Shown piece after piece: positions 2,201 to 59,818 of a stretch of 64,000 nucleotides of DNA; position 1 is the first letter of the stretch, and every line of letters begins with the position of its first letter. The translations under genes were made by a program, and so were the position numbers. The stretch lies in sequence record NC_042116.1; one strand, given 5' to 3'. A model generated the notes under the pieces. That model did no database searches. It worked only from the letters and a program-made list of their open reading frames with translations, and had not been told where the DNA came from.

Positions 2201-2209
2201 TTTGTTGAA

Positions 2210-2939: not shown

Positions 2940-2950
2940 TCTTTACAAAT

Positions 2951-2986: not shown

Positions 2987-3017
2987 GTAATCACACCAAA
3001 CGAAAGGGGTTACATAA

Positions 3018-3233
3018 ATGAGATTAAGTGAGATTAGAAAAGTACTGAAGGAACTTAACAAGCTGGCGAAAGAATCGGGGAACCTCGATCCAGATATTAA
3101 GTTTTGGAGTGATGATATGGACACTGATTTACTATTAGAACTTTGTCCTGCTGATGATCTCAGTGATTCAGTACTGAAAAGCGGTAATATTCAAATAAGA
3201 TTGAATGAAGTACTTAACCCAAAAGTTAGATAA
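3018..3233 (+). CDS. Hypothetical early protein
   Basis: Own promoter and RBS. Confidence 0.7.
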   Translation: MRLSEIRKVLKELNKLAKESGNLDPDIKFWSDDMDTDLLLELCPADDLSDSVLKSGNIQIRLNEVLNPKVR

Positions 3234-3285
3234 TCTTTACAATTGCGGGGGTTGACAGCCTCCGCTTTTTTATGGTACTATAATA

Positions 3286-3336
3286 TCAATCCAGAGAAAT
3301 GGACTAACCCTAGAGGGTGCCGAGATCCATCTATAG
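3286..3336 (+). ncRNA. Two-hairpin element E3
   Basis: tcca-GAGAAA-tgga, accc-taga-gggt; promoter TTGACA(3252)-18-TACTAT. Confidence 0.55.
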
Positions 3337-3349
3337 AAAATTTAGTCCT

Positions 3350-3398
3350 TAATAGATATAGTTCCGCACCCTCTAGGGTATCCAATTTCTCTTGTATA
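3350..3398 (-). ncRNA. Two-hairpin element E4
   Basis: caa-GAGAAA-ttg, accc-taga-gggt; promoter TTGTAA(3432-3427)-17-TACAAT(3409-3404). Confidence 0.5.
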
Positions 3399-3532
3399 TA
3401 AGTATTGTACAGTACTGAGATTATAATTACAAGGGGTAAACAGAAATAAAAATTAAAATTAAAACGAAAAAAGAACTTGTATTATAATCTCAGTACTGTA
3501 CAATTCTCTATATCGAAAACGGGAGAAATGAT

Positions 3533-3988
3533 ATGAATTCAAAACAGTTCCAAGATGCAACAAGAGAAACATTTTTAAAGTACTTTCCTCATGGTCACAT
3601 AAGCATTTCTATGTTGGCAATAGGTGGTGGTTGTAATATCTTTTGTGGCTTGATTGGAGACATTAATGATGTAGGTGGTAAGATCCGCATGAATGATCCT
3701 GTAACGGTACGGGCTTATATTCATGATAACTTTTCATTTAATGATGAAAGTACTGAATTGGAAAACGTTGTTATTGAGTTCGATGGTTCGTGGATCTCAG
3801 TACTGCCAGACAATCCGCATCATTATTGTCAATCCCACAAGGTGCCAAGTCGCAAGATTAACGCAGAACCTAAAAAGGCATTAAGTAATTTGGATAAGTA
3901 CTTTAAACGATTAAAGGACTGTGTAACAGAGCAAGCAGGATTAAATCGCATTATTCAGCAGGATAAGATCCCAGCGAAATATCTATAA
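3533..3988 (+). CDS. Hypothetical early protein
   Basis: Promoter and RBS GGGAG. Confidence 0.8.
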   Translation: MNSKQFQDATRETFLKYFPHGHISISMLAIGGGCNIFCGLIGDINDVGGKIRMNDPVTVRAYIHDNFSFNDESTELENVVIEFDGSWISVLPDNPHHYCQSHKVPSRKINAEPKKALSNLDKYFKRLKDCVTEQAGLNRIIQQDKIPAKYL

Positions 3989-4063
3989 TATATTGTCAAA
4001 AGTACTTGCATTGTATAAGCGAGTACTTTACAATAAGTTATCGTTAATTGAGAGGATTCGAAT

Positions 4064-4474
4064 ATGTTACATGTTAAAGGTTTTTCTGAGGGTGGTTATT
4101 GCTTTATGATTGGTGATAAGCCTGTTTCTGTTGTTGAAGCATTGCAGAAAAATGGTAAGAAATTTAACAAGAATACATTAAACGCTTTAAATAGAAATAA
4201 TCTTGCTAATGAAAGCGATCTTGTGTCATTTGAGTTACAAGTACAATCATTACATAAAGGATTAACACCTGAATATGTAATTCAAATTTTACGCAATGAA
4301 TATAATATTGATTTTAATAATGATTTTCATGAGTTAAGTTCTGCCAGCGTACTGGATTTATTAACAGTATATCATATTGCACAATATCGAGCACCCTCAC
4401 CATGTAATCGTGATGGTTCGCCAATGCGTTATTTTTACCAGTACTTACAACGCTTCATAGAAAAGAAAAAATAA
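4064..4474 (+). CDS. Hypothetical early protein
   Basis: Promoter and RBS GAGG. Confidence 0.75.
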   Translation: MLHVKGFSEGGYCFMIGDKPVSVVEALQKNGKKFNKNTLNALNRNNLANESDLVSFELQVQSLHKGLTPEYVIQILRNEYNIDFNNDFHELSSASVLDLLTVYHIAQYRAPSPCNRDGSPMRYFYQYLQRFIEKKK

Positions 4475-4520
4475 TCAAATAAGGGGTTGACTTCGGTTAA
4501 CCCTTTTTGCTATACTAATA

Positions 4521-4570
4521 TTACTCCAGAGAAATGGACTAACCTTATAAGGTGTATAAGTGTACCTATA
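4521..4570 (+). ncRNA. Two-hairpin element E5
   Basis: tcca-GAGAAA-tgga, acct-tata-aggt (compensatory change); promoter TTGACT(4487)-18-TATACT. Confidence 0.55.
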
Positions 4571-4662
4571 ATAAAATAATTAAAATTCATACAAAAAAGT
4601 ACTTGTATTATAATCTCAGTACTGTATAATTCTTTATATCGAAAACAAACGAGGGTTTTTAA

Positions 4663-5085
4663 ATGAGAACATGTAAAGAGTGTGGGAACAATTGCAACGT
4701 ATTATCTAATGGTGTTGTCCATCATTACAACGAGGATGATAAAATTGATTATGATCTAGATGGGGATCATGTTGCAATACCTGAATTATCTGATTCTGAA
4801 AACAACATGTTAAATCCAATTCTTCAAAGTACTTTTAATTTTAATGGTGATGTTCCTTGTATTAACTACGCCGCGAATGGTGGAGGTTATGAAACTTACC
4901 AGTACTTCATTTGTGCTGATGGTGGATGTTTAGGAATTGGAACAGTAATTAATGAGTTTCATAAAGTAAACTTTAATGATCCTGATGATAAACAATGGCA
5001 CATTGTAGGGGTTGACGTGAATTATGAAAATACTAATCTGATAGATGATCACACAGGGGATTATATACCAGTAGCATATAGTTAA
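4663..5085 (+). CDS. Hypothetical early protein with N-terminal CxxC
   Basis: Promoter and RBS. Confidence 0.75.
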   Translation: MRTCKECGNNCNVLSNGVVHHYNEDDKIDYDLDGDHVAIPELSDSENNMLNPILQSTFNFNGDVPCINYAANGGGYETYQYFICADGGCLGIGTVINEFHKVNFNDPDDKQWHIVGVDVNYENTNLIDDHTGDYIPVAYS

Positions 5086-5123
5086 CACTACAACGGGGAT
5101 CATTGATCCCCTTTTGAGGTTAT

Positions 5124-5384
5124 ATGAATTTGTTTTATAGTACTAGAAAATTAGTAGTTTCATTTGATTGTAATTCTGATAAAATACATTGTGTAATATA
5201 CAGAAAAGGAATTCCCCGTTCTGATAACTGGAAAGTACTACAATCCTATACAATCAAACGTAAAGGGTTTAAACAGTTAGATGACCGTACACAAAAGGCA
5301 TGTTTACGGCAAGTACTTAAAGCCATGCGTAACCGTATAACGCAAGCCTTACATGTTGCATTAACTACAAAAGATATTTTATAA
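5124..5384 (+). CDS. Hypothetical early protein
   Basis: RBS GAGG. Confidence 0.65.
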   Translation: MNLFYSTRKLVVSFDCNSDKIHCVIYRKGIPRSDNWKVLQSYTIKRKGFKQLDDRTQKACLRQVLKAMRNRITQALHVALTTKDIL

Positions 5385-5433
5385 TATAATGAAAAAGTAC
5401 TGGACAATGCTCCGGTACTTTGTTATAGTACTT

Positions 5434-5483
5434 ACATCGAAGAGAAATTCGAATAGCCCATAGGGTTCAGGGGTATATCTATT
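5434..5483 (+). ncRNA. Two-hairpin element E6
   Basis: tcgaa-GAGAAA-ttcga, gccc-ata-gggt (G-U pair); promoter TGGACA(5401)-17-TATAGT. Confidence 0.5.
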
Positions 5484-5570
5484 AAAAATAATTAAAATTA
5501 AAATGAAAAAGAACTTGCATTATATTATGGTTATGGTAATATATGTATATCGAAACGGGAGGTTAAAGAA

Positions 5571-5639
5571 ATGAAACTACGTTATCAATGGCTGTTGTTT
5601 GCTTTGTTTATCCTTATTACCTGCGTAAACTTTGATTAG
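5571..5639 (+). CDS. 22-aa hydrophobic peptide MKLRYQWLLFALFILITCVNFD
   Basis: First ORF after a promoter, RBS GGGAGG; below the ORF-track cutoff. Confidence 0.55.
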   Translation: MKLRYQWLLFALFILITCVNFD

Positions 5640-5649
5640 GGGTTATATT

Positions 5650-5991
5650 ATGATGATTGTTAATTTTGGTGATGATATCAATTTCAATAGTATTAAGCAT
5701 ATTATTGAAAATAGTCAATCTGTATCTATTACTTTATGTTCTGGCGATGGTGATGATTTTACGGTGATAGAGCGTGAAAGAAGTAAATTTGCTGGTTTTC
5801 ATGAGGCTGATCTTATTGTTATTAGTACTGTACGGAATGCTAATGGTGATGGTATCTATGTATATCCTGAATACTTCACTATTGAACAGGCAGACACTGC
5901 TATTGAAGCCTTAAAAATAAGGGCGAGTGATACTAACATTAAATCATCTGAATTATCGGATTCATTAACTGATTTATTAGAATCGGAATAA
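5650..5991 (+). CDS. Hypothetical early protein
   Basis: ORF track, start trimmed to the RBS. Confidence 0.7.
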   Translation: MMIVNFGDDINFNSIKHIIENSQSVSITLCSGDGDDFTVIERERSKFAGFHEADLIVISTVRNANGDGIYVYPEYFTIEQADTAIEALKIRASDTNIKSSELSDSLTDLLESE

Positions 5992-6056
5992 CATATTAAA
6001 AGTACTTGCATTATATTAGCGAGTACTTTATAATAAGTTATCAAGTGAGGTACACA

Positions 6057-6104
6057 ATGAAATGGTTAATTATAGCAGTACTGATTTACATTATCTTTTT
6101 TTAA
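6057..6104 (+). CDS. 15-aa hydrophobic peptide MKWLIIAVLIYIIFF
   Basis: First ORF after a promoter, RBS GAGG. Confidence 0.45.
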   Translation: MKWLIIAVLIYIIFF

Positions 6105-6123
6105 TCAAGAGGAAGTATTAAAA

Positions 6124-6333
6124 ATGGCACATAAAGATCGTCGTTACAATGTTAACCCTGAATTTACCGGACACGAATCAGGCAAGAAACAATTTGTTAT
6201 TCGTTTTTGTGGTGATTTTGTTTCTTCGCATTCAAAGCGTGATGAAGCAGAAAAAGAGATCGCCCGATGGAAAAGTACTGGAACCGTTCCACATATCGGA
6301 AAGCAATGGGATAATCTAGTTGAACCTGTTTAA
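6124..6333 (+). CDS. Hypothetical early protein
   Basis: RBS GAGG, terminator downstream. Confidence 0.7.
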   Translation: MAHKDRRYNVNPEFTGHESGKKQFVIRFCGDFVSSHSKRDEAEKEIARWKSTGTVPHIGKQWDNLVEPV

Positions 6334-6395
6334 TTAATCAATATTAATAGTACTGGATATTTCACCAGTACTGTTTTTTTATACAGCATAATATA

Positions 6396-6446
6396 TAATA
6401 GATACATTTTCGCACCCTGTGGGTCAAAGACATTTCGCTGTCTATG
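6396..6446 (-). ncRNA. Two-hairpin element E7
   Basis: gaca-GCGAAA-tgtc, accc-aca-gggt; promoter TTGACA(6480-6475)-17-TATTAT(6457-6452). Confidence 0.55.
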
Positions 6447-6568
6447 AAGTAATAATACAGTATTTTGATATACGTGTCAAGGATTAAATTAAAATTAAAA
6501 CAAAAGAAAGTACTTGCATTAAGTATGAAGTACTGTATAATCTTTTATATCGAAACGGGAGAATTAAA

Positions 6569-6835
6569 ATGAGTAACGCATTGAAAGCCATGATTTCGTT
6601 GGTAATTTCAGTACTGATAACCTTTATAATATTAACTGCGGCGAGAGATGATGTTCTGTGGCGGTTAACCATGTTAGGATATGAAATTGAAGATACATGG
6701 TATTCTTTTTTGACATATGGCCTTAATGGGATATATGCTATATTAATGGTAGGTTGTTTTTATATTTTGTTTTGTTTAATGTTTTATATTACAGGGGGCA
6801 GTAATGAGAGTACAACCAATCCAGCCAATCATTAA
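6569..6835 (+). CDS. Small membrane protein (2 TM)
   Basis: Two hydrophobic segments; promoter and RBS. Confidence 0.7.
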   Translation: MSNALKAMISLVISVLITFIILTAARDDVLWRLTMLGYEIEDTWYSFLTYGLNGIYAILMVGCFYILFCLMFYITGGSNESTTNPANH

Positions 6836-6974
6836 GTTAGCGAATAGTACGGTCAAGAATGAATATTCAAAAATTGTTGTTGACATTCCGTGTAGTACTG
6901 TGGTATCATTAGGTTCTTACAAATCGTGTGATTTGTATAATTCAATTTATAAACAATAAAAGGTAAATTTAAAT

Positions 6975-7832
6975 ATGGGTAAGTTCATTAGTTATGGTAT
7001 TCTTGCGATTATTGTATTCGTTGGCTTGGGTGCATTGTTTGGTTCGTGGTACACGGTTGATCAGCAAGATCGTGGGGTAGTACTAACGAATGGTAAAATT
7101 ACCAGTATTGCAGAACCTGGTTTGAACTGGAAAATGCCATTTATGGATTCTGTTGTACAAATTCCAGTCACTGGACAAAATAAAAGTTATTCGAATCTAA
7201 AAGCATATAGCCGAGATCAACAACCGGCAGATATGACTATTTCTGTATCATTCTCAGTCCCAGCGGCTAAGGTAGGGGAATTATATAGTACTTTTGGTGA
7301 TATTGACAATCTAACTACTCGTGTTATTGATCGTCAAGTACCACAAGCTGTTGAAAATGTTTTTGGTCAGTTTAATGCGATTTCAGCAGTACAAGATCGT
7401 AATAAGTTAGTTACTAACTTAAACATTGCAATTAAAAAGGCAATGGAAAACTACCCAGTAGTAATTGAGAGTGTACAGGTTGAAAACCTATCATTCAGTC
7501 CAGCATATGAAAAATCAATTGAAGAACGTATGCAAGCAGAGATCGCAGTTACAAAGCGTGAACAGGACTATGCACAGGCTAAAATTTCAGCATCTATCAC
7601 AGTTGCGAATGCACAAGCTGACGCTGATAGCCAGTTAGCAAAGGCAACGGCAGCAGCTAAAGCAACACGCCTACAGGGTGAAGCTGATGCAGCAGCAATT
7701 AAGGCGAAGTCCGAAGCACTAAACAATAATCCACAACTTGTACAGTTGGCGGCGGTGGATAAATGGGATGGTGTACTACCTACTCAAATGGTTCCATCTG
7801 CTACAGTGCCGTTTGTGAATCTAAACAAATAA
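6975..7832 (+). CDS. SPFH/band-7 (prohibitin-like) membrane protein
   Basis: N-terminal TM, YTVDQQDRGVV..GK, EPGLNWKMPF, coiled-coil tail, KWDGVLP. Confidence 0.9.
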   Translation: MGKFISYGILAIIVFVGLGALFGSWYTVDQQDRGVVLTNGKITSIAEPGLNWKMPFMDSVVQIPVTGQNKSYSNLKAYSRDQQPADMTISVSFSVPAAKVGELYSTFGDIDNLTTRVIDRQVPQAVENVFGQFNAISAVQDRNKLVTNLNIAIKKAMENYPVVIESVQVENLSFSPAYEKSIEERMQAEIAVTKREQDYAQAKISASITVANAQADADSQLAKATAAAKATRLQGEADAAAIKAKSEALNNNPQLVQLAAVDKWDGVLPTQMVPSATVPFVNLNK

Positions 7833-7842
7833 GTACTATCAC

Positions 7843-7871
7843 AAAAAGCCTCGCATTGTCGAGGCTTTTTA
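7843..7871 (+). terminator. Rho-independent terminator
   Basis: gcctcg/cgaggc stem flanked by A- and T-tracts. Confidence 0.75.
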
Positions 7872-7964
7872 TTATCTGAATAATTAAAATTAAAACGTAA
7901 AAAGTACTTGCATTGCATGAGCGAGTACTTTATAATACTTACATCAACCACAAGAGGCAACAAC

Positions 7965-8321
7965 ATGAAAACTGAATTTTTCGCGACAAGAACACTGGCA
8001 CGTAACGCGGTAGAAGCTCTTAATGGTAAGTTTAAAGATTTTGGTAAAGATGCTCCTACTGGTGAACGTTGGGGGGTGCTGGTGGATGAAGTACTACCAG
8101 TACAAAAGGAACAACCTGTACTTGCAGAAGAAAAAAGTAATCTTGACGTACACCTTGATTTTCTTAGTACTGTAGCAGAAGATGCAGCAAAAGCATTGAA
8201 TCAGCCAACTGGCATTCGTGGGGAACAAACGTTAACAACACCAAATAAGAAGCCTGTACGGGTTATGTGGCGTCGTTCAATTGTGGCGGTACGTTTGTCG
8301 GCACTACTGGCAAAATCGTAA
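7965..8321 (+). CDS. Hypothetical early protein
   Basis: RBS GAGG at the trimmed start. Confidence 0.75.
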   Translation: MKTEFFATRTLARNAVEALNGKFKDFGKDAPTGERWGVLVDEVLPVQKEQPVLAEEKSNLDVHLDFLSTVAEDAAKALNQPTGIRGEQTLTTPNKKPVRVMWRRSIVAVRLSALLAKS

Positions 8322-8370
8322 CACAAACCAGTGGGGGCGGTATAATGCCCCCTTTATTAATCGAGATCAT

Positions 8371-8613
8371 ATGAAAAAAGTTAAAGTTGATAATACACAA
8401 TTACGCATACATTTCAAGGCACAAACAAAAGTACTTGATAAGGCTATTCGTATTGTGAAAGATTATAATAATGGAAGTGTTAGAGCTAGACGGTTAGGGT
8501 GTGGTTTATTTTCAGTAATAGATGTATCACATAACGAACGGATCGTTATTAAAAATAAAACACTTAATTTAATGACTCATGAACAATATAATAAATTCGT
8601 CGAACGACGTTGA
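8371..8613 (+). CDS. ParE/RelE-like small protein
   Basis: Basic 80 aa; pattern RR......S.DV....RIV.....LMTHEQYN recalls the plasmid/ICE ParE-like family. Confidence 0.4.
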   Translation: MKKVKVDNTQLRIHFKAQTKVLDKAIRIVKDYNNGSVRARRLGCGLFSVIDVSHNERIVIKNKTLNLMTHEQYNKFVERR

Positions 8614-8669
8614 CATAATCCCCTAAATATGTATAATAATAATTATACACGATTAGGGGATTTTTTATT

Positions 8670-9131
8670 ATGCCTGATAAATTTAAACATAAGAATGGTG
8701 CTACTATAGCAGGTCATGCCGATAAGTGGAGTGATGAAAATCGTTCAAGTACTAGCCATGATGCAGGTCAAGGCAGTAAAGGAAGTAGAAATCAAGGTAC
8801 AGGAATTAAAGGTAAACAAAACGCAATGCCATCACAAGGTATTGATACATCCAAAATGGATAAGTCCGAAAAATTAAAGTACTTTAATTCATTGGGTTTA
8901 CTTCAACCAAAACAAGAATTATCTATTAAAACATGGCCTGAAACATTACGCAAAGTGTTTAAAGATGAACCTGTATACATTAAAGATATTACTACAGCGA
9001 TAAAATCTATTGAACCAGCAAGATATCAACAAGCCATTCAATCAGCATTCAATGCTTATAACGAAATTACAAAACAATCAGATGATGTTTATGATATATA
9101 TGCCGCAATTATGCAAGCATTACAAGGTTAA
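8670..9131 (+). CDS. Hypothetical protein
   Basis: TTGACA-17-TATAAT promoter upstream. Confidence 0.65.
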   Translation: MPDKFKHKNGATIAGHADKWSDENRSSTSHDAGQGSKGSRNQGTGIKGKQNAMPSQGIDTSKMDKSEKLKYFNSLGLLQPKQELSIKTWPETLRKVFKDEPVYIKDITTAIKSIEPARYQQAIQSAFNAYNEITKQSDDVYDIYAAIMQALQG

Positions 9132-9197
9132 AAATAAGGGTTGACTTAGGTTAACCCTTTTGCTATTGTATCAGTACACAAACATAAGGAATATATT

Positions 9198-9548
9198 ATG
9201 AAAAAGTTATTATTACTCGCTGCATTGTTTAGTACTACAGTTTCAGCTCAAACATTTACATGTGATAACTTTACTCTGTATCAAGGTATCGGGAATAATC
9301 AATACAGACAAGTAGATGATGCAGGTGTACAATCATCTTTGATTATTACTATTGAAAGTACTGAACCATTGATTACCGTTTCTGTACAAGGTGATAAAGA
9401 AGTAGTGCAATTCTGGAAAGATTATAATGTATACAGAAATGTAACTGGTGAAATTTCACAAGATGGTAATAATTTTATAATGAAAACAGCTATACAAGAT
9501 AGTACTGGATTTTATATACCTGTTAAAATTGAGTACCATTGTAAATGA
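9198..9548 (+). CDS. Exported protein with signal peptide
   Basis: MKKLLLLAALFSTTVSA signal sequence. Confidence 0.75.
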   Translation: MKKLLLLAALFSTTVSAQTFTCDNFTLYQGIGNNQYRQVDDAGVQSSLIITIESTEPLITVSVQGDKEVVQFWKDYNVYRNVTGEISQDGNNFIMKTAIQDSTGFYIPVKIEYHCK

Positions 9549-9742
9549 AATTATCATTTCAATTTATGCAAAAACGTGTACAGTACTTAAGTACTAAACT
9601 TAAAGCATCATTTGAATTACAATATACTATTAACCAGAATTATCATTTAATGAAGAATGGAAGATTCATTGTTATGGATCAACCGCTTGAAGTACTGGAA
9701 ATAGTAGTAAGTGCATTATTAAGTAATAACATTAAAAAATAA
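9545..9742 (+). CDS. Hypothetical protein
   Basis: 4-nt overlap with the upstream gene. Confidence 0.55.
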   Translation: MKLSFQFMQKRVQYLSTKLKASFELQYTINQNYHLMKNGRFIVMDQPLEVLEIVVSALLSNNIKK

Positions 9743-9787
9743 TTAAATCAAGGGTTGACAGATGTTAACCCTTTTTGCTATACTACT

Positions 9788-9838
9788 ATCAATCCAGCGA
9801 AATGGACTAACCCTATAGGGTGTATAGTTATGTCAGTA
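9788..9838 (+). ncRNA. Two-hairpin element E8
   Basis: tcca-GCGAAA-tgga, accc-tata-gggt; promoter TTGACA(9755)-18-TATACT. Confidence 0.55.
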
Positions 9839-9947
9839 CTTTTATTATATGCATAGAAAAAAGAATTTAAAATTAAAATGAAAAAGTACTTGTGTTAGAT
9901 GCTGGAACTGATAGAATGTAGTTATTGAAACAACGGGAGTAAATGAA

Positions 9948-10187
9948 ATGGCTAATAAAGAAGTGGAATTTAAAATTAGAAAATGGTCAGATACTAACGG
10001 TCGTCCATTTGATGTAGTGCTGGTGGATCATTTAAAGAACAATCAGCATTTTCAGCCTAATGTTGAATTTAGTACTATCGAACATGCTGAAAAGCATATG
10101 GAAACTTTGAATACTTTAATTCAAAATCATCCTGACCGTATCAACTTTATTCGTGACCATTGGCCTGTTGATGCTGGTATAGAATAA
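9948..10187 (+). CDS. Hypothetical early protein
   Basis: Promoter and RBS GGGAG. Confidence 0.7.
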   Translation: MANKEVEFKIRKWSDTNGRPFDVVLVDHLKNNQHFQPNVEFSTIEHAEKHMETLNTLIQNHPDRINFIRDHWPVDAGIE

Positions 10188-10270
10188 AAATTAAAACGTA
10201 AAAAGTACTTGACTATATCAGTTGAGTACTTTAAAATAGAATCTTAATTAACGCAATAGGAAACTAAATC

Positions 10271-11164
10271 ATGAAAATGTACAAAGGCATCGCAGGTAAA
10301 GCAATCAAAGAAAACCGTCCACTGCTAAGATCAGAACTGGAATTAGTTGTTCCATCTATCTTTTCAAGTACTGGTCACGAATCACGTTCAGCCCGTTTTG
10401 CACCTGTTGCAACCATCGACGTTGTAGACCGTTTAGCAAAAGAAGGTTATCAACCATTCTTTGCTATTCAGTCCAATGTACGTGACGAATCTAAACGCGA
10501 ATTCACTAAGCATATGCTGCGTTTCCGTCAACATGATGGCAAAACATCCGGCGAATCTAATGAGATCATTCTCGTTAACGCAAATGATGGAACAAGTGCA
10601 TACCAATTAATGGCTGGTCAATTCCGTTTCGTTTGTGCTAATGGTCTGGTTATGGGTAACATGCAACATAACACAAAAATCTATCACAAAGGTAACAATA
10701 TCATGGATGACGTGATCGAAGGCGTCTATTCAGTAGTGAAAGATTTTGATAACATTGAACGTTATAAAGATGAAATGCAACTAATACAACTCAATGATAT
10801 CGAACGTAAAACGTTTGCAACTGCTGGTTATCTCATGAAAGAGGGTATGCCGGAATCAGGTTCAATGGATGACTTTGTATATAATCCATTACAACTATTA
10901 TCACGTTCAGGTCTAAACAGTCAAGACCAGTACGATAATAGTTTGTATAGTACTTTTAATACTGTACAACAACACTTAATCAACGGTGGTCAACGCTCAT
11001 TCATGGAAGATCGTAATGGTCGTACTCGCCGCCGGTCAAGCCGTAGCGTTACTAATATCAATAAGAACATTGATATCAATAGTAACTTATGGCAACTCGC
11101 TACCGCTCTGGTAGAGAAGAATACTAAGGTAGTGCATGATATCGTTGATGCACAATTAGCATAA
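10271..11164 (+). CDS. DUF932-family protein (plasmid leading-region / cryptic-prophage type)
   Basis: PSIFS...HESRSARF....T..V...L..EGYQPFFAIQS..RD..KREFTKHMLRFR; IILVNANDGTSAYQLMAGQFRFVCANGLV. Confidence 0.85.
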   Translation: MKMYKGIAGKAIKENRPLLRSELELVVPSIFSSTGHESRSARFAPVATIDVVDRLAKEGYQPFFAIQSNVRDESKREFTKHMLRFRQHDGKTSGESNEIILVNANDGTSAYQLMAGQFRFVCANGLVMGNMQHNTKIYHKGNNIMDDVIEGVYSVVKDFDNIERYKDEMQLIQLNDIERKTFATAGYLMKEGMPESGSMDDFVYNPLQLLSRSGLNSQDQYDNSLYSTFNTVQQHLINGGQRSFMEDRNGRTRRRSSRSVTNINKNIDINSNLWQLATALVEKNTKVVHDIVDAQLA

Positions 11165-11252
11165 AAAATAAGTACTAAAATCATATAAGGGGTTGACTTA
11201 GGTTAACCCCTTTTGCTATACTTATTTTATCGAAACAAACGAGGGTTAGTAA

Positions 11253-11588
11253 ATGTTAGATGTATATGTAAGTTCTGATTTAGTTTCAAATGGTAGAAAT
11301 GAATTCGGTACTGAACAAGAAAAAACAGAGTACTACATCATTGCAGAATCTCTAAATGGTCAACGTATTAGATTAGATAGTGTGTCAGTTGTTAATAGAG
11401 AATACACTGATACACAATGTACTGAGTACTTAGAACGTGTAGTTACAAAGATTAAAAATCATTTAGCTGGTGGCGGTAAGTTGAATCAAGATTGTTGGTA
11501 CGAAATAGATCCTTGCTATGGTTCACAACGTTATATCGATTTGGATAGTACTGGTTACTTTTATCAACGTGAGAAACTCGAAGATTAA
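11253..11588 (+). CDS. Hypothetical early protein
   Basis: Promoter and RBS. Confidence 0.75.
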   Translation: MLDVYVSSDLVSNGRNEFGTEQEKTEYYIIAESLNGQRIRLDSVSVVNREYTDTQCTEYLERVVTKIKNHLAGGGKLNQDCWYEIDPCYGSQRYIDLDSTGYFYQREKLED

Positions 11589-11659
11589 TAATAATGGGGT
11601 TGACTATAGTTAGCCCCTTTTGTTATAATTCTTATACACCATCACGAAAGGAAAGAAAC

Positions 11660-11857
11660 ATGACCAGAGAAGAAAGAATTGAAGCCGCTCATAAAGTACT
11701 GTCATACAAACATCTTGAAATGATGGAAGCTATGGAAAGAGTACTAGGCACGTTTGGCGAAGAAAATAAAGATAAATTCGCCGCCGTATATGATGAAGTT
11801 GAAAACATTCTTTATCCGCATGGTGCGGGTGAAGATGCAGTATACTGCGAAAATTAA
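11660..11857 (+). CDS. Hypothetical early protein
   Basis: RBS AAGGA at the trimmed start. Confidence 0.65.
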   Translation: MTREERIEAAHKVLSYKHLEMMEAMERVLGTFGEENKDKFAAVYDEVENILYPHGAGEDAVYCEN

Positions 11858-11918
11858 TAATTGACAAACTCTGTCAGTACTGATATACTGGCAGAATATT
11901 AAATCAGAGGATACAATC

Positions 11919-12101
11919 ATGGTTCAAGTAGATATGACTGAATTGCGGAAACGTTGGTATGATCTGGCACGTTCAGGTACTGCTATCACTGGTGATAATA
12001 GAACGCTTTTCAATACACTTGATGGCTGGCAACGTCAAGAATTAAAAAATGCATATCTTAAAGGTATGACAGATGAAGTGCAAGCATGGGATGAAGCATA
12101 A
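11919..12101 (+). CDS. Hypothetical early protein
   Basis: Promoter and RBS GAGGA. Confidence 0.65.
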   Translation: MVQVDMTELRKRWYDLARSGTAITGDNRTLFNTLDGWQRQELKNAYLKGMTDEVQAWDEA

Positions 12102-12147
12102 TTAAAAATAAAGGCTTGACTTAGGTTAAGCCTTTTGCTATAGTACT

Positions 12148-12198
12148 ATCAATGCAGCGAAATGCACTAACCCTATAGGGTGCGGAGCTATGTCTGTA
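12148..12198 (+). ncRNA. Two-hairpin element E9
   Basis: tgca-GCGAAA-tgca (compensatory change), accc-tata-gggt; promoter TTGACT(12116)-17-TATAGT. Confidence 0.55.
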
Positions 12199-12288
12199 AA
12201 AGATATTAAAATTCAAATGAAAAGTACTTGACCTATATAGCTGGTGGATGATATATTATTAGTACTGGATGCAACCGAGGGCAATACT

Positions 12289-19814: not shown

Positions 19815-19865
19815 CTTTTAGAGCACAAGATTGTGCTAATAATACAAGTTCAAGGGAGTGAACAC

Positions 19866-23659: not shown

Positions 23660-24472
23660 TTGATGTTTTTAAAATTCTTTTTAACACATGAAGATTCAAA
23701 TACTTCAAAAGGTTGGTCTATAGGAAATACTTTATTAGTTAGTACTCATAATGATCATAAGAAAGAACTATATGAAACTACTAATTTTCATAATGTATTA
23801 AGTAACTTAGCATTTCATATGAAATCAACAAATGTACATACTGTTGATAAAGATTATAGAGTATTTTTAATAAATGTTTCAGATGAAGCCATGTTCCAGT
23901 TAGAAATGTTATATATTCCAGAAAATAGTTTTTGTACATATAATATATTAACAGGTAAAATTGGTTTTGGTGATTCAGAAAGGAATGCGATTTTAGCAAG
24001 TTTAGATGAAAAAAATGGTATGAGTTTATCAGGTTGGGTTAAAAATGACAATAAGAATTCATTATTTTTCGATTTTAATGTAACCTCAACCAAGTTAATA
24101 GATATGGACGAATACCAACTTACTGTTCCAGATACATTTTATGATCAAGTACTTAATGAATTAAGACCTTACATATGTCAAGAAAAAATACATTTATTAA
24201 AAGTTTTTGGTCAATATGTTTTATATAATAAAACTGCTTTAAATAATTATTTAGATTTATATTTTGAAAATTTAAATTCTTCTGGTTCAGAAAAGAAAGA
24301 AATTGAAATACAATATTGTCAATTAACTAGAATACAAATGGTTTTAGCTATCAAACTATTCATGGAAGATGATAAAGATTTCATTTTATATAAAGATGAA
24401 TTTCCTGATGAATACTATTCAATAGGTGAATTGTGTAGAAAAATAATGAACGTTTCAGGTGAAACGTTTTAA
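23660..24472 (+). CDS. Hypothetical protein, weak FQ-motif relative
   Basis: SDEAMFQLEMLY. Confidence 0.7.
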   Translation: MMFLKFFLTHEDSNTSKGWSIGNTLLVSTHNDHKKELYETTNFHNVLSNLAFHMKSTNVHTVDKDYRVFLINVSDEAMFQLEMLYIPENSFCTYNILTGKIGFGDSERNAILASLDEKNGMSLSGWVKNDNKNSLFFDFNVTSTKLIDMDEYQLTVPDTFYDQVLNELRPYICQEKIHLLKVFGQYVLYNKTALNNYLDLYFENLNSSGSEKKEIEIQYCQLTRIQMVLAIKLFMEDDKDFILYKDEFPDEYYSIGELCRKIMNVSGETF

Positions 24473-24494
24473 AAAATTATGCTATAATATACAA

Positions 24495-29515: not shown

Positions 29516-29725
29516 TAATGTGGTATTTGGAAATAAGTATAGATAATTCTGAAACATCTTACGAAGTGGTGTTTACTGGATTATATCATACAGAACAGGA
29601 AGCAAAGAAAGAAAGTAGTGAATGGTTTAGGGGTTTAAAGATTATTAAATTCGTACCAATTTATACTAAAGAATGACAATTTAAGGGAGTAGTGTAGCAA
29701 GTTTATTCACAAGGAGTGTGGAGCG

Positions 29726-48752: not shown

Positions 48753-49790
48753 TTACAAATATGTCGTATCAAGCATTACTTTAAGTTCTAAAACATCTCC
48801 AGTAATTAAATGTTTAGCGACAATTGTACCAACAAATAATCCAGTTGGTATTCTTCCTGGTGGTGGGTTTTGTTCTAAGAAATTATTTAGATAAAATTTA
48901 TAACGTTGAATATTTTGAGCTACTGTTAATCCTGGAGTAACTGCATTATCTTTAATATTACGACCAAAGCGATAATCAATAAATTCTAAAGTCCCATCAC
49001 GTACTTCCAAGTGCCAAGAAATATTATCTGCTGTCATTTGACCATCTGGATTTCCATAAAAAGTCATAGTAACATCATATAAATCTGTAATTCTACCAAT
49101 AAATTCACTTGAGAGAATACCAATACTAAAAGGAATAGTAAATTCTTGTCCTTTAGTTGCATCCAATTTAATAGTATAAGTACTATCAACTGGAACAACG
49201 ACTGAGTTGTATGATCCTGTTCCAGCAGGTTGCCATAAACGAGCAGCCATTGCTAATTGAATGATCCCATCAGTCGCAGTAACCATTGAAGCAGCCGAGT
49301 TTCCATTACCTATTAAAAGTGTATTTGGACTTGACGCTTTTACAAAAGCAGCCTTCTCACCATTCGGAACATAAACAGGTGCAGATGGTTCAGGTGAAGG
49401 TGCATAAAAAATATTATAATTTGGCACAAAGAACGTTTCAGAATTTGACATATGAACTAAATTATTGTATAATTTTGTACAATACCCAACAGTATCATCA
49501 TCTTCATTGAGAACTCGTATGAAAAATGAACCTGTTGGTATTGCAGCAAGTGCATCATCATCATCTAAAGTCGGGTCTAAAATAACACCAGTACTGGTAG
49601 TACCAGTAATTGATACTTTACGGTGAATAGCTAAATTACTTACATCAATTAAGTCGAAGCGTGTACTTGAACGTTGTTTAAGAATTCTTAAATTTTTAAT
49701 AAGTGTACCGTTCTGTAGCTTAGCTCCATGAACGATGATCCCCGTTGTGCCAAACGGTAATCTATATACACCAGCAATAGGTTTACCCAT
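48753..49790 (-). CDS. Probable virion protein, N-terminal paralog of 47806-48711
   Basis: Both start MGKPIAG....PFG..GI....A.L..GT...N.RI.KQRS...FDL. Confidence 0.7.
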   Translation of the reverse strand: MGKPIAGVYRLPFGTTGIIVHGAKLQNGTLIKNLRILKQRSSTRFDLIDVSNLAIHRKVSITGTTSTGVILDPTLDDDDALAAIPTGSFFIRVLNEDDDTVGYCTKLYNNLVHMSNSETFFVPNYNIFYAPSPEPSAPVYVPNGEKAAFVKASSPNTLLIGNGNSAASMVTATDGIIQLAMAARLWQPAGTGSYNSVVVPVDSTYTIKLDATKGQEFTIPFSIGILSSEFIGRITDLYDVTMTFYGNPDGQMTADNISWHLEVRDGTLEFIDYRFGRNIKDNAVTPGLTVAQNIQRYKFYLNNFLEQNPPPGRIPTGLFVGTIVAKHLITGDVLELKVMLDTTYL

Positions 49791-49842
49791 ATCAAATCTC
49801 CTATAAAAGTATGATATTTTTAATTATCATTCCAATTTTGTC

Positions 49843-49871
49843 TTGACACAGGAATGAACACGTGATACATT
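49843..49871 (+). promoter_or_regulatory. sigma70 promoter upstream of the NAD-salvage genes
   Basis: TTGACA-17-TGn-TACATT. Confidence 0.55.
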
Positions 49872-49973
49872 GTATCTTGTACTGAGTTATTTATTTTAGG
49901 GTGTTTCTAAATGCATAATTTATATTCATTAAAAAAATGGAACATCAAAAAAAATTATGTTATAATATAAGCA

Positions 49974-50027
49974 TCAAAGCGTTGTAGCTTTGAATAATAG
50001 ACTAAGGGAGTCTTAGATATGAAAAAT
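49974..50027 (+). promoter_or_regulatory. Structured leader shared with the NAMPT gene, copy 1
   Basis: tcaaagc-GTTGTA-gctttga, then ACTAAGGGAGTCTTAGATATGAAAAAT. Confidence 0.65.
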
Positions 50028-51092
50028 GAAAAAGTATATGTATATATTGGTCGTTTTCAAATGGCACATTCAGGCCATGAACAAACAATTAAACATGCGT
50101 TAGAAAATTCAGACCGTTTGGTAATTCTTGTTGGTTCATCTGACCTTGCACGTGATCCTAAAAATCCGTTCACGTTCGATGAACGCAATCAGGTACTGGA
50201 TGCTATGAGTACTCGTTTAGCACAAGAAGAATGGGCTAAAGGGCGTTCGGTTAAGATTAATATCTTACCAATCCACGATTACGTTTATAACAACAGCAAA
50301 TGGTTAATGGAAGTACATGAACAAGTCAAATCAGTAACATCAAGTACTGATATTACTATTACTGGCTGTCAGAAAGAAGCAGATGAAAGTACTTTCTATT
50401 TGAATTTCTTCCCACAGTGGAAACCAGATTTCATTCCAGAGCATAAAATTTCTGAAGGTAATTATACTGTAAACAGTACTGAAATTCGTAATCAATTCTT
50501 CAGTACTAAACAAGTTCCTACAAGTCTTCCAGAAGAAACAAAAGAATTTCTTGCGAAATTTATGCATACTAAACCAATGGTATTCGATAATTTAATTGGT
50601 GAATTCAATTTCATTAATCGTTATCGTTCAGAAATGATTGAAAAATTACCATTTAAAACTATACCATTTATTACTGGCGATGCATTGGTAATTTGTGCTG
50701 GTCATGTACTATTGGTTAAACGTAGGACTTTCCCAGGAAAAGGTCTATATGCACTTCCTGGTGGTTTCTTCGATTCTGAACAAGATGGAACTCAAATTGA
50801 TTCCGCTATTCGTGAATTAAAAGAAGAAACTAAGATTGATGTCCCATTAAAAGTACTTTATGGTTCTATTCGGGAAAGTATGGAATTCGGGGATAAACAC
50901 CGTTCTCTACGTTGGCGTATTATTACCAAATGTGCTTATATCCAATTACAAGACAGTACTTTACCAAAAGTAAAAGGTGCTGATGATGCGGAAAAAGCAT
51001 TTTGGATGCCTCTTGGTGAATTAGTTAATAATCGTGATAAATTCTTTGAAGACCATTTAAGTATTATTGATACTTTCTTAGGTATTTTATAA
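50019..51092 (+). CDS. nadM: Bifunctional NMN adenylyltransferase / ADP-ribose Nudix hydrolase (NadM-Nudix, NatV-like)
   Basis: IGRFQ..H.GH; KNPFTFDER; LLVKR...PGKGLYALPGGF; Nudix box AIRELKEET. Confidence 0.93.
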   Translation: MKNEKVYVYIGRFQMAHSGHEQTIKHALENSDRLVILVGSSDLARDPKNPFTFDERNQVLDAMSTRLAQEEWAKGRSVKINILPIHDYVYNNSKWLMEVHEQVKSVTSSTDITITGCQKEADESTFYLNFFPQWKPDFIPEHKISEGNYTVNSTEIRNQFFSTKQVPTSLPEETKEFLAKFMHTKPMVFDNLIGEFNFINRYRSEMIEKLPFKTIPFITGDALVICAGHVLLVKRRTFPGKGLYALPGGFFDSEQDGTQIDSAIRELKEETKIDVPLKVLYGSIRESMEFGDKHRSLRWRIITKCAYIQLQDSTLPKVKGADDAEKAFWMPLGELVNNRDKFFEDHLSIIDTFLGIL

Positions 51093-51140
51093 TAATATTG
51101 GAGTACACTATATAGTACTCCATTTTAAGCGAGTGAACAT

Positions 51141-51659
51141 ATGTTATATTGCCAACCAAATAGTTTTTATGATGAAATGCTATATATTTCTAAAGCTAAT
51201 GATAAATTTTTAAAGAAGTTATCATTGCCACAATATAATATTTCAAATTCTATATTAATGATAGAACCAATAAGTTATATTATTAAAATAGTACTCAATG
51301 AACCTAATTTTAGTGGTACTGGAAATATAATTGCATTACGAACTTTCGGAGTTAATAACTCATTAACAATGACTGCCGATTGCACTTATATGAGTGTATA
51401 TTACGCAATAGTTGTTAATGGAACATTATTGATTTCCAAAGGATCTATATCAGATGTTTATATGAATGATGATGGTGATACAATATATACCACATCAGAT
51501 GGATATGGTGATGAATATCATTATAGTATTCAAGATATAGCTAATGCTGGAAATGATTTATATGCGTTGTATGCATATGTATATTATAATGATAATATAT
51601 TTCGACCAGATAATTTATTAGCAAAAATTCCAGTAATTTTATTAAAGAATTTGGTATAA
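51141..51659 (+). CDS. Hypothetical protein
   Basis: ORF track. Confidence 0.6.
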   Translation: MLYCQPNSFYDEMLYISKANDKFLKKLSLPQYNISNSILMIEPISYIIKIVLNEPNFSGTGNIIALRTFGVNNSLTMTADCTYMSVYYAIVVNGTLLISKGSISDVYMNDDGDTIYTTSDGYGDEYHYSIQDIANAGNDLYALYAYVYYNDNIFRPDNLLAKIPVILLKNLV

Positions 51660-51671
51660 GCCAAAATAACC

Positions 51672-51724
51672 GAAAGCGTGTAGCTTTCACACCTATACTA
51701 AGGGAGTCTTAGATATGAAAAATT
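51672..51724 (+). promoter_or_regulatory. Structured leader, copy 2
   Basis: gaaagc-GTGTA-gctttc, then the identical 27-nt block. Confidence 0.65.
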
Positions 51725-53193
51725 TAAAAGTAAACTTTATTCTTAATGTTGATTCATACAAAACTGGTCACGGTTTTATGATGAAAGATGGCGTTGTAGC
51801 ACTCGAATCAAACATAATTGCCCGTAAACCATCCAAATTTGCTACTCATGTAGTGATGATGGGTATTCAGTACTATCTACAAGAGTATTTGGATATTAAT
51901 ATTACTGTAGATGATATCAACGAAGCAGAACATGAAACTAGTCAACGTGGTGATGACTTTGACCGCGAATTTTGGGAACATATTGTAGAAGTACATGGTG
52001 GTAAAATTCCATTACATATTCGTGCTATTCCTGAAGGTACGTTGGTTCCTGTTGGTTGTCCTTTGGTACGTACATTTAGTACTGATGAACGTGTGGCAGT
52101 AATTGAAAGTTACATTGAAACTCAGTTACAACGTGCAATTTGGTTCCCAACAACTGTGGCAAGTAATGCTCGTAGCATTAAAGAATTTTTAGCAGATACA
52201 ATGGAACGTCATGCAGGTCATCGTTTTGTAGATTATCATCTTCATAACTTTGGTGATCGTGGTGCATCAAGTTACGAATCAGCCATGATTGCTGGTATGG
52301 CACATGCAACTGTTTTTAATGGTTCTGACTGTTTATCTGCTAATCGGTTCATTAAATATTACTATAATACTGACAAAGCATATTTGACCAGTGTCACTGC
52401 TAGTGAACATAGTGCAACTTGTTCAAACTCAGACGCAGACAAACGCGACGACTTTAATATGGCGTTGAAGATGGTTCGTTTGTGGGAGAAAAAAGTTGAT
52501 CGGTTCATTGCAAATGGTTCTGTTGGTGTTCCACCAATTGTATCAATAGTTATTGATACTTATGATGCATATCGTTTTGTTCGTGAATTTATTGGTACAC
52601 GTTTAAAAGATATGATTATTGAAATTGCAAAACGTTGCCCTGGTGCTAAACTTGTTATGCGTCCAGATAGTGGTGATCCAACAACCATGCCAATTGAAAT
52701 CATTGAACTTCTGATGGAAAAATTTGGCAGTACTGTAAATGGTTATGGGTACAAAGTACTTCCACCATTTATTGGTGTAATTCAAGGTGATGGTATTAAT
52801 GAAACTAGTATTCGTCAAATTGTTTCTAATCTTGATGATAAAAAACTTTGCATTGAAAATATAGTTTTTGGTATGGGTGGTAAATTAGTTCATCCTGCTG
52901 ATGGTCGCGATACTTTTTCTTTTGCAATGAAAGGATCTGCACAAAAACTTGAAGATGCTACTTGGGAAGATTTATTCAAAGATCCAATTACTGATGTAGG
53001 TAAACGTTCTTTGCGTGGTCGTGTAACAACTTATGAATGCACTAATACTCATAAAATTATTGCAGAACGTATAGAATTACAAGAAATCAATCCATTCTTA
53101 CGAGATATGATGGTTGATATGTATATTGATGGTGTTATCATGAATCTCTGTTCTTTTGATGAAGTTCGTGAACGTGCCAACAAAGGGTTATAA
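51715..53193 (+). CDS. nadV: Nicotinamide phosphoribosyltransferase
   Basis: DSYKTGH; LHNFGDRG; SEHS; V.DTYD; RPDSGDP; IQGDGI; FGMGG; SFAMK. Confidence 0.95.
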   Translation: MKNLKVNFILNVDSYKTGHGFMMKDGVVALESNIIARKPSKFATHVVMMGIQYYLQEYLDINITVDDINEAEHETSQRGDDFDREFWEHIVEVHGGKIPLHIRAIPEGTLVPVGCPLVRTFSTDERVAVIESYIETQLQRAIWFPTTVASNARSIKEFLADTMERHAGHRFVDYHLHNFGDRGASSYESAMIAGMAHATVFNGSDCLSANRFIKYYYNTDKAYLTSVTASEHSATCSNSDADKRDDFNMALKMVRLWEKKVDRFIANGSVGVPPIVSIVIDTYDAYRFVREFIGTRLKDMIIEIAKRCPGAKLVMRPDSGDPTTMPIEIIELLMEKFGSTVNGYGYKVLPPFIGVIQGDGINETSIRQIVSNLDDKKLCIENIVFGMGGKLVHPADGRDTFSFAMKGSAQKLEDATWEDLFKDPITDVGKRSLRGRVTTYECTNTHKIIAERIELQEINPFLRDMMVDMYIDGVIMNLCSFDEVRERANKGL

Positions 53194-53235
53194 TATTTTA
53201 GGGGGCGTTTTGCCCCCTTATTTTTAAGGTTTAAT

Positions 53236-54407: not shown

Positions 54408-54608
54408 ATGAATATTTTTATGGGAGTATTGACAGTAATAGTCTATTTGTTTATAGGGTATCTGGCATATCATGACCACAAACAAAAATTTAAAGAAGAA
54501 CCACAAAAGAAAGTAAAAAGTATAATTTATGCAATAACAGCGGTGGTATTATATGCCCTTATTGGTTTTTTCTTAGCAGTACTTTTATACTTGATTTTAA
54601 CAATGTAA
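54408..54608 (+). CDS. Membrane protein
   Basis: Two TM segments. Confidence 0.6.
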   Translation: MNIFMGVLTVIVYLFIGYLAYHDHKQKFKEEPQKKVKSIIYAITAVVLYALIGFFLAVLLYLILTM

Positions 54609-54617
54609 GGATATATA

Positions 54618-55737: not shown

Positions 55738-56529
55738 ATGAATCTCAATAACTTTATTGCAAATAAAGGTGTTCCACGGTTAGTATTTGCTACAGGTGCA
55801 GGATTATCACAAGAATCTGGAATTAGTACTTTTCGTGATGCTGATAATGAAGGTTTATGGGATCAGTACAATATTGATGAAATTTGTAATTTTGCAACTT
55901 TTCATATTAATTATCAAAAAGTACATAATTTTTACAACCAGCTACGAGAAAACTTAAAACATGTTGAACCAAATATTGGTCATCATATTATTGCTGAATT
56001 TCAAAAAATGTACGGGGATGATAGGGTAATACATATCACGGCTAATGTTGATGATTTATCAGAACGTGCAGGTGGAACAGCAATGCATGTTCATGGTAAA
56101 CTAACTGAAGTAGTAGAACCTTTTAGTATTAATTCTAACAATTATGAAGTAAAAGATATTGGATATGAAAGTTTCACACCAACTGATGGGGTAATTTCTA
56201 AACCAAATATTGTTATGTTTGGTGAAGGATTTTGGTTCACTGATGGTGTACGTAAACCAATTTACGATGATATGTATCTAGTACTAGATAGTTTAACTGA
56301 ACAAGATACTGTAATTGTTATTGGTTCATCTGATACAGTAATTCCTTGGTCAGTATATGCTGGGTTAGCAACTCCAGCCCAAACATTAAATGTGAATCCA
56401 GAATCACACGAAAAAGATGAATATTTTACATATAATATGTATCAACCAATCAGCAATGCAATATCTATGATTGACCAATATATTCACATGCGTATGGATA
56501 AACAAGATTTTAGCTCAGTAGAATATTAA
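55738..56529 (+). CDS. Sir2/CobB-family NAD-dependent deacylase
   Basis: TGAGLSQESGISTFRD; IT.NVDDL.ERAG; HVHG; KPNIVMFGE; IGSS. Confidence 0.9.
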   Translation: MNLNNFIANKGVPRLVFATGAGLSQESGISTFRDADNEGLWDQYNIDEICNFATFHINYQKVHNFYNQLRENLKHVEPNIGHHIIAEFQKMYGDDRVIHITANVDDLSERAGGTAMHVHGKLTEVVEPFSINSNNYEVKDIGYESFTPTDGVISKPNIVMFGEGFWFTDGVRKPIYDDMYLVLDSLTEQDTVIVIGSSDTVIPWSVYAGLATPAQTLNVNPESHEKDEYFTYNMYQPISNAISMIDQYIHMRMDKQDFSSVEY

Positions 56530-59758: not shown

Positions 59759-59818
59759 ATGAAACAGCTTTAAAAATTATGGTATAATCTAAACATAACT
59801 ACAATGAAGGAAATAAAA

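Follow-up and report, generated by a model that had tools for sequence, protein, structure and literature searches.

The window analysed here, a stretch of 64,000 nucleotides, corresponds with 100% identity to bases 1-64000 of the 354-kb genome of fHe-Yen9-04, a Yersinia jumbo phage in the genus Eneladusvirus. Among its genes are natV and nadV, two genes of nicotinamide adenine dinucleotide (NAD+) salvage separated by the open reading frame (ORF) g097, and each of the two is preceded by a short structured RNA leader, which is the element considered in the following. Together, NadV and NatV constitute NARP2, the phage NAD+ reconstitution pathway 2, which counters NAD+-depleting defences; the pathway overproduces NAD+ and consumes phosphoribosyl pyrophosphate (PRPP), and its operon was toxic when cloned in E. 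coli (10.1101/2024.02.11.579819).

The natV-nadV locus and its two leaders

Both genes carry a leader of the same layout, in which hairpin 1 is followed by a linker of 8-9 nt and by hairpin 2 with the Shine-Dalgarno sequence in its loop, the AUG lying two bases further on (Table 1). A block of 27 nt, which takes in the first three codons, is identical at 50001-50027 and 51697-51723 (chance expectation 0). An original prediction, made from the letters of the window, had already pointed to this block, which is real, although its second copy had been placed one base too high. Other details of that prediction agree with the present analysis, namely a hairpin before each of the two genes, the CTAAG/CTTAG arms enclosing the Shine-Dalgarno sequence, and TATAC at 51694-51698 with TAGAC at the matching place of the first copy. 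A covariance model of the jumbo-phage leader (R1), applied to the whole 354-kb genome, returned the natV and nadV leaders as two matches at an expectation value (E) of about 1e-11, the next best match having an E of 0.11; the earlier remark that no other gene bears the leader is thus borne out.

Table 1 Features of the natV-nadV locus in the window (position 1 is the first base of the window)
Feature	Position	Strand	Description	Basis or remark
Promoter of the natV-g097-nadV operon	49938..49966	+	predicted sigma-70-type early promoter	TGGAAC, 17 nt, TGtTATAAT (extended -10)
natV hairpin 1	49974..49993	+	7-bp stem UCAAAGC/GCUUUGA, loop GUUGUA	
natV leader linker	49994..50001	+	A/U-rich	length and sequence vary among relatives
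natV hairpin 2	50002..50016	+	CUAAG-GGAGU-CUUAG, Shine-Dalgarno GGAG in loop	start codon 50019
natV (g096)	50019..51092	+	bifunctional nicotinamide mononucleotide (NMN) adenylyltransferase / Nudix ADP-ribose pyrophosphatase	Pfam PF01467 + PF00293; annotation
g097	51141..51659	+	172-aa hypothetical protein	matches phrog_25832; without leader of its own
nadV hairpin 1	51672..51688	+	6-bp stem GAAAGC/GCUUUC, loop GUGUA	
nadV leader linker	51689..51697	+	UAUAC (51694-51698) could pair with hairpin 1 loop	weak support
nadV hairpin 2	51698..51712	+	identical to natV hairpin 2	start codon 51715
nadV (g098)	51715..53193	+	nicotinamide phosphoribosyltransferase (NAMPT)	Pfam PF04095 + PF18127
Terminator	53200..53218	+	predicted intrinsic terminator, 8-bp G+C-rich stem, then T run	closes the three-gene operon

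Hairpins that hold a Shine-Dalgarno sequence in the loop just 5' of an ATG occur 78 times on the plus strand and 19 times on the minus strand of the whole genome (for example at 19848-19863, 29706-29722 and 54603-54616 of the window) and seem to be a usual feature of translation starts in fHe-Yen9-04. As such hairpins are common in the genome, hairpin 2 is remarkable for its exact conservation and not for its type.

Conservation and covariation of the leader

Among related jumbo phages, 16 loci drawn from Eneladusvirus, Mimasvirus, Alcyoneusvirus, the 7t3 group and Hallingskeid bear the leader on both natV and nadV. The gene order natV-(ORF)-nadV recurs in Serratia phage BF, Erwinia pEa_SNUABM phages, Pectobacterium phage CBB, Cronobacter phage GAP32, Xanthomonas phage XbC2, Erwinia phage Hallingskeid, Salmonella phage 7t3, Klebsiella phages RaK2 and KP13-7 as well as several genomes of IMG/VR, and in every one of these relatives both genes are preceded by the leader. 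The stem of hairpin 1 is found in numerous variants with pairing kept (AAAGC/GCUUU, AAGGU/GCCUU, GACAGC/GCUGUC, CCGAC/GUCGG, AGAGAGU/GCUCUCU, GCCGCU/GGCGGU and CCAAC/GUUGG). In a model-guided alignment of this clade, 91% of the cells are paired, both sides have changed in six of the seven pairs, and the covariation score reaches 0.44, compared with 0.18 for shuffled alignments and at most 0.15 with the partner columns slid. The structure belongs to the sense RNA, because G-U pairs are present, which on the opposite strand would read A-C. Within the loop of hairpin 1, the pattern G-N-N-G-(U/G)-A is kept, with G15, A17 and G18 being invariant. Hairpin 2 is identical in sequence in the closer genera, shows a CUUAG..CUAAG swap in the natV leader of RaK2, and, in nadV leaders from the 7t3 group, has been remodelled around AAGAGG. 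An AUG-UAG present in many hairpin 1 loops had been considered as a start-stop mini-ORF, an idea that was dropped in view of the existing AAG, UAG and CGG variants.

These data also bear on the objection, raised with the original prediction itself, that the two leaders might be a simple local duplication. A functionless recent duplication or gene conversion would account for the 27-nt identity, including the first three codons, and for the occasional likeness of the two leaders within one phage, as in RaK2, whose leaders resemble each other. However, R1 gave exactly two strong matches in each of six genomes of 345-378 kb (fHe-Yen9-04 and five further complete ones), and since both leaders are kept across genera with compensatory changes, recent local duplication is excluded; homologous leaders and covariance models show conservation far beyond this phage. 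A palindromic operator acting at the DNA level fares no better, as G-U pairs work in sense RNA only and the arms vary freely with pairing kept, which is the opposite of a protein-read palindrome. Taken together, these two explanations are very improbable.

The natV leaders of the 7t3 group (L008 1245-1275, L018 3438-3470, L021 3447-3478, L019 3442-3470) contain two copies of the heptamer GAUGUAG or of a near variant. One copy forms the hairpin 1 loop, whereas the other is single-stranded and lies immediately 5' of this hairpin, where the transcript is predicted to start; the repeat suggests a reader of single-stranded GAUGUAG.

The leader is by no means confined to this clade. A search of IMG/VR with the 15-mer of hairpin 2 led to a 172-kb phage (L053/L066) with a natV about 37% identical and the same hairpin 2, the loop of hairpin 1 differing in its natV leader (AUAGA). 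A diverse alignment of NatV proteins was then used to gather 80 highly dissimilar viral loci from IMG/VR, and most of them display the four-part layout before both natV and nadV. In this wide family, hairpin 1 has a stem of 5-10 bp of free sequence and a pentaloop A-N-A-G-A (mostly G-AUAGA-C, in one clade C-AGAGA-G), the linker of 8-20 nt often reads CAU...AAC, and hairpin 2 has a stem of 5-7 bp, again of free sequence, with GGAG(U) in its loop and the AUG 0-4 nt further on. A second covariance model for this wide family (R2), used with an E cut-off of 0.01 on 576 kb, yielded 84 matches on the sense strand only, 77 of them directly 5' of natV or nadV and the remaining seven 5' of small ORFs immediately upstream of natV. 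For 74 distinct sequences, 94.6% of the cells are paired against 52% after shuffling, all 12 pairs change on both sides, and the covariation score is 1.02 versus 0.21. A mutual-information scan of the same sequences ranked the helix pairs first and found no covariation beyond the two hairpins. The loop of hairpin 1 starts with A in all 74 sequences, followed by U/G/A, then A (73), G (74) and A (73), and that of hairpin 2 reads GGA(G)(U), counts that lean towards the model by which the sequences were picked.

Gene specificity was also seen in scans that covered whole genomes or paid no attention to genes. Five complete or near-complete phage genomes of 163-292 kb contain one or two R2 matches each, all at the natV/nadV locus, and in a gene-blind pattern search of IMG/VR (GATAGAC, 14-32 nt, AAAGGAGTTTT), 43 matches had a genuine hairpin 1 stem, and 38 of these lay in front of natV or nadV, stemless matches lying mostly at no particular place. 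Both hairpins are furthermore present, with related loops, at some bacterial natV homologues, namely those of Caulobacter zeae (AUAGA), Methyloversatilis (ACAGA), Asticcacaulis (GCAGA), Xenophilus (ACGGA) and Roseibium (GGAGU). Among the other NadV phages examined, the leader was not found in KVP40-like VH7D, KpF2, phiN3, CcrMagneto, Colwellia 9A and NARP1-type SFPB; Aeh1 has a weak variant with the loop AAGAA.

Leader-bearing small ORFs just upstream of natV are located, in some of the distant phages, at L140 2137-2510, L127 1763-2574, L093 1954-2323 and L121 2163-2580 as well as in L253. One product, of 109 aa, has a coiled-coil N-terminus and contains the motif CxWNHTDGCGWFYE, the other is 124 aa long, and neither has a Pfam family; both may be extra regulon members or candidate regulators.

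Regarding the relation of the window copies to the wide family, R1 cross-detects the natV leader of the distant 172-kb phage at 29 bits, where the 15-mer of hairpin 2 is identical, and layout, place, gene association and hairpin 2 are common to both. The jumbo-phage leader is therefore treated as a subtype that has diverged within one kind of element. Across subtypes, the leader consists of a covarying hairpin 1 whose purine-rich apical loop is conserved, a linker of 8-20 nt that is A/C/U-rich and unstructured, and a covarying hairpin 2, which ends 0-8 nt before the start codon. The leader is a widespread structured 5' RNA that occurs almost only on natV and nadV, in many unrelated phages and in some bacteria, and a sense-strand structure under strong selection that lies over the ribosome binding site and is specific to two genes of one pathway. 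In its general form, the proposal of an NAD-linked cis-regulatory RNA is thus reasonable, and the leader looks like a new RNA motif family.

Operon context and position of the leader

With a promoter before natV and a terminator after nadV, the three genes form one compact operon. Transcription is predicted to start at about 49973, one base 5' of hairpin 1, and a TTGAAAC/TGnTATAAT promoter arrangement lies upstream of natV in all relatives. The promoter belongs to a repeat family (D13; pattern TGAAAC..(A)n..TTATGnTATAAT) with three copies at 24460-24491, 49938-49969 and 59760-59791, the second of which drives the natV operon. As an internal promoter for nadV, only a weak candidate was found, TGGTATAAG, which overlaps the stop codon of g097.

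The close spacing of promoter and hairpin 1 is not peculiar to the window. A strong sigma-70 promoter was recognised on 34 of 76 leaders; its -10 box typically precedes the model start by 9 nt, which places the beginning of hairpin 1 at about +2. From this arrangement, in which the natV copy of the window takes part, it might be argued that the leader is a constitutive module without any specific signal, spread by horizontal transfer and composed of a 5'-terminal hairpin against 5'-end-dependent decay of the mRNA, an unstructured A-rich standby stretch and a Shine-Dalgarno hairpin of the sort common in this genome. A mere stabiliser, however, needs no particular loop, yet the loop is near-invariant over very distant phages, and no other gene uses the leader in eleven scanned genomes. 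The leader is also kept at intercistronic places off the 5' end, such as that of the nadV copy in the window. The nadV hairpin 1 of L066-L069 shares bases of its 5' arm with the natV stop codon; being thus placed between cistrons, the leader must be more than a 5'-end cap. On this evidence, a purely constitutive module is distinctly doubtful.

Where nadV directly follows natV (L066 3640-3700, L067 3645-3704, L069 3185-3243), hairpin 1 of nadV takes in the natV stop codon with its 5' arm, and ribosomes that end natV must consequently melt this hairpin; the overlap could provide translational coupling of natV and nadV.

The ORF between the two genes had originally been taken as unrelated. It does separate natV from nadV, but it is no random insertion, since its place is conserved in most relatives. 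The encoded protein diverges fast, with 18-67% identity among the jumbo relatives compared with 60-92% for the enzymes. It has no Pfam match, and its AlphaFold model (pLDDT 90) finds its best structural matches, all weak (Z 4-6.2), among NTP pyrophosphatases of the ITPase/Ham1/Maf type. In RaK2 and KP13-7, the slot is filled by other ORFs of 341 and 474 aa, the former having an endonuclease-like look as judged from its sequence. Directly 3' of the natV stop, a perfect 8-bp hairpin (TGGAGTAC..GTACTCCA, 51099-51122) holding an AGTACT motif is followed by TTTT and could act as a weak attenuator or processing site between natV and g097.

Further afield, a gene for a SIR2-family NAD-dependent deacylase (g105, 55738-56529) without a leader copy is situated 2.5 kb downstream of nadV, likewise in relatives. 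The first 12 kb (window 1-12200) are densely occupied by promoter-plus-hairpin repeat families (D1-D9), the sequences of which are unrelated to the natV/nadV leader.

Candidate readers and known regulatory systems

The original prediction had further pointed to a possible pseudoknot between the hairpin 1 loop and the linker of the nadV copy and had drawn on the NAD+-II riboswitch for comparison. The pairing of loop GUGUA with UAUAC indeed exists in the nadV copy, and some nadV leaders of relatives offer pseudoknot-like pairings with apparently compensating changes (GUUGU:AUAAC, GAUGU:AUAUC, GAAGU:ACUUC). When compared with permuted loops and shuffled linkers, this pairing is marginal for nadV (p about 0.03-0.04) and was rejected for natV (p 0.86-0.96); it is broken in CBB/GAP32, L019 and L021, and no natV leader shows it. 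Since the loop is shared by natV and nadV, a pseudoknot cannot explain its conservation. A cmscan of window positions 49000-53000 against all 4227 families of Rfam 15 at E up to 10 gave chance snoRNA and miRNA matches only, and the wide-family leaders at the same limit matched no family, NAD+ riboswitches and the PyrR site included. With neither an Rfam match nor a supported pseudoknot, kinship with NAD+-II is not supported.

A very small riboswitch of its own kind might nevertheless be considered, in which the invariant loops of both hairpins, with GGAG in that of hairpin 2, would enclose a metabolite of the pathway (NAD+, NMN, ADP-ribose, nicotinamide or PRPP), the Shine-Dalgarno sequence being hidden or freed as a result. 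The motif tracks only natV and nadV across phages with unrelated gene sets and different hosts, plus some bacterial natV genes, a gene-bound spread typical of a metabolite sensor that needs no partner protein. Moreover, the guanidine-II riboswitch likewise has two hairpins with a variable-length linker between them, and the invariant loops of the leader could form a pocket. On the other hand, the leader has no internal loops, junctions or pseudoknot and no covariation beyond its two stems. The loops of the two hairpins are not complementary, the natV pseudoknot is unsupported, and no riboswitch model of Rfam matches. Finally, the conserved unpaired part comprises only about 10 nt, which is little for a ligand as large as NAD+. 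On balance, a riboswitch is unlikely.

Alternatively, the leader could be a site for a general host RNA-binding regulator, i.e. a PyrR-like protein of phosphoribosyltransferase fold or CsrA. The PyrR binding loop reads CC-AGAGA-GG, and CsrA bridges a hairpin-loop site and a Shine-Dalgarno site. In the AGAGA subtype, the leader reads ..UCC-AGAGA-GGA.. and comes close to the PyrR consensus, but the Rfam PyrR model scores no leader even at an E of 10, and this includes L078, whose leaders read CC-AGAGA-GG. There is no terminator alternative after hairpin 1, and a PyrR attenuation system is not known from Enterobacteria, the hosts of the jumbo clade. With respect to CsrA, A-N-GGA is present in the hairpin 2 loop and in a few hairpin 1 loops as well (AUGGA, ACGGA), and the two sites are spaced in a way that would suit dual-site binding, whereas GGA is absent from most hairpin 1 loops, with GUA in the window and AGA in 73 of the 74 wide-family sequences. 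As a global regulator would also leave the restriction to two genes unexplained, either protein is a quite improbable reader.

The explanation that we favour, although with somewhat less than even confidence, is a gene-specific cis-regulatory element in the form of a translational operator bound by a protein, variants of this scheme included. The apical loop is invariant, its stem covaries freely, the linker is variable and there is no tertiary partner, a combination that favours a protein or another macromolecule as reader. Such a leader would act in cis on translation initiation, and possibly on the lifetime of the mRNA, with the levels of natV and nadV being set alike by one common signal. 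The invariant loop of hairpin 1 would serve as the recognition mark for a trans-acting protein which, once bound next to hairpin 2, may stabilise or cover the Shine-Dalgarno hairpin and limit the entry of the 30S subunit. As only natV and nadV are inherited with the motif across unrelated phages, the NatV and NadV enzymes themselves would be the best protein candidates, acting by autogenous feedback that restrains a pathway draining PRPP and overproducing NAD+. By the same token, since nothing else travels with the motif, the most economical readers would be the NatV or NadV enzyme, a metabolite or a universal host component. Precedents for autogenous control are T4 gp43 and B. subtilis PyrR.

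Several points weigh against a protein-bound operator. NMNAT-Nudix and NAMPT enzymes are not known to bind RNA. Invariant loops hide loop-loop or ligand contacts from covariation, so that a small riboswitch is possible, and about half of the leaders lie right at a promoter start site, which fits a simple stabilising role too. Searches of the phage for known regulators gave no match to RegA (PF01818), an E of 0.03 for RegB (PF10715), which is below the cut-off of that family, and no recognisable CsrA. The product of g097, by its place the obvious candidate, is an unlikely regulator, as RaK2 and KP13-7 have no detectable homologue and both keep the two leaders. In addition, R2 has no match in the window at an E of 0.01, and the loop of hairpin 1 differs between the subtypes, being G-N-N-G-U-A in the jumbo phages (GUUGUA and GUGUA in the window) and A-N-A-G-A elsewhere; common descent of hairpin 1 across the subtypes is likely but unproven.

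Literature searches returned no description of a leader RNA for natV or nadV and nothing on the regulation of NARP2, and when RNA-seq support was sought, one DNA run from wastewater alone held the sequence. NARP2 rebuilds NAD+ after its destruction by Thoeris, DSR, SIR2 and similar defences, and a covarying, gene-specific leader that is not in Rfam offers a concrete, testable handle on how this pathway is regulated. The leader is a compact candidate, be it for a riboswitch of a new class or for a feedback loop between enzyme and RNA that would likewise be new. That it represents a new, very small class of riboswitch, or an enzyme-read operator sensing the same metabolites, and tunes the expression of NAD+ reconstitution is rather unlikely; if true, it would be the first RNA sensor wired into phage counter-defence, common to many phage lineages and some bacteria, with NAD+, ADP-ribose, nicotinamide and PRPP as candidate metabolites. 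With 45-55 nt, the element is small enough for direct biochemistry and could serve as a portable expression part.

In comparison with known systems, the leader shares with the NAD+-II (pnuC motif) and NAD+-I (nadA motif) riboswitches that they are short 5' leaders of NAD-related genes acting on the ribosome binding site. Unlike these, it matches neither model and consists of two plain hairpins on phage natV and nadV, with no internal loop or supported pseudoknot. The guanidine-II riboswitch (mini-ykkC) likewise has two small hairpins with invariant apical loops, a variable linker and a 3' hairpin at the ribosome binding site, and its two loops pair on ligand binding. In the leader, however, the loops (A-N-A-G-A or G-N-N-G-U-A versus GGAGU) differ from each other, are not ACGR and are not self-complementary. 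PyrR, which has the phosphoribosyltransferase fold, binds RNA in a nucleotide-dependent manner, and its binding loop is a purine-rich AGAGA loop closed by C-G pairs in the leader of an operon of nucleotide metabolism. In contrast, the stem of the natV/nadV leader lacks a purine bulge, an antiterminator/terminator alternative and an Rfam match, its main loop is AUAGA (GUUGUA in fHe-Yen9-04), and it precedes NAD genes instead of pyrimidine genes; the resemblance is thus a lead for the idea of an enzyme-bound operator and no sign of membership. CsrA/RsmA dual-site leaders also combine an upstream hairpin-loop site with a second site in a Shine-Dalgarno hairpin 10-20 nt apart, but the GGA core is missing from nearly all hairpin 1 loops, the phage lacks CsrA, and gene specificity would not be explained.

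Comparable in arrangement are the phage operators, such as the T4/RB69 gp43 hairpin, RegA sites and the MS2 and PP7 coat-protein hairpins, in which a sequence-specific hairpin loop lies beside the Shine-Dalgarno sequence. These operators mediate translational repression, often by the product of the gene itself. They differ from the leader in that there is no likeness of sequence, that the phage has no RegA, and that the leader is common to the genes of two enzymes in many phage lineages. The iron-responsive element (IRE) is eukaryotic and of unrelated sequence, and the reader of the leader is only putative here; yet the IRE, too, has a small loop that is invariant and a stem that covaries, and it recurs on several mRNAs belonging to one pathway. 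It is read by IRP1, a moonlighting metabolic enzyme, and in its logic the IRE/IRP1 pair is the nearest analogy to the leader of natV and nadV.

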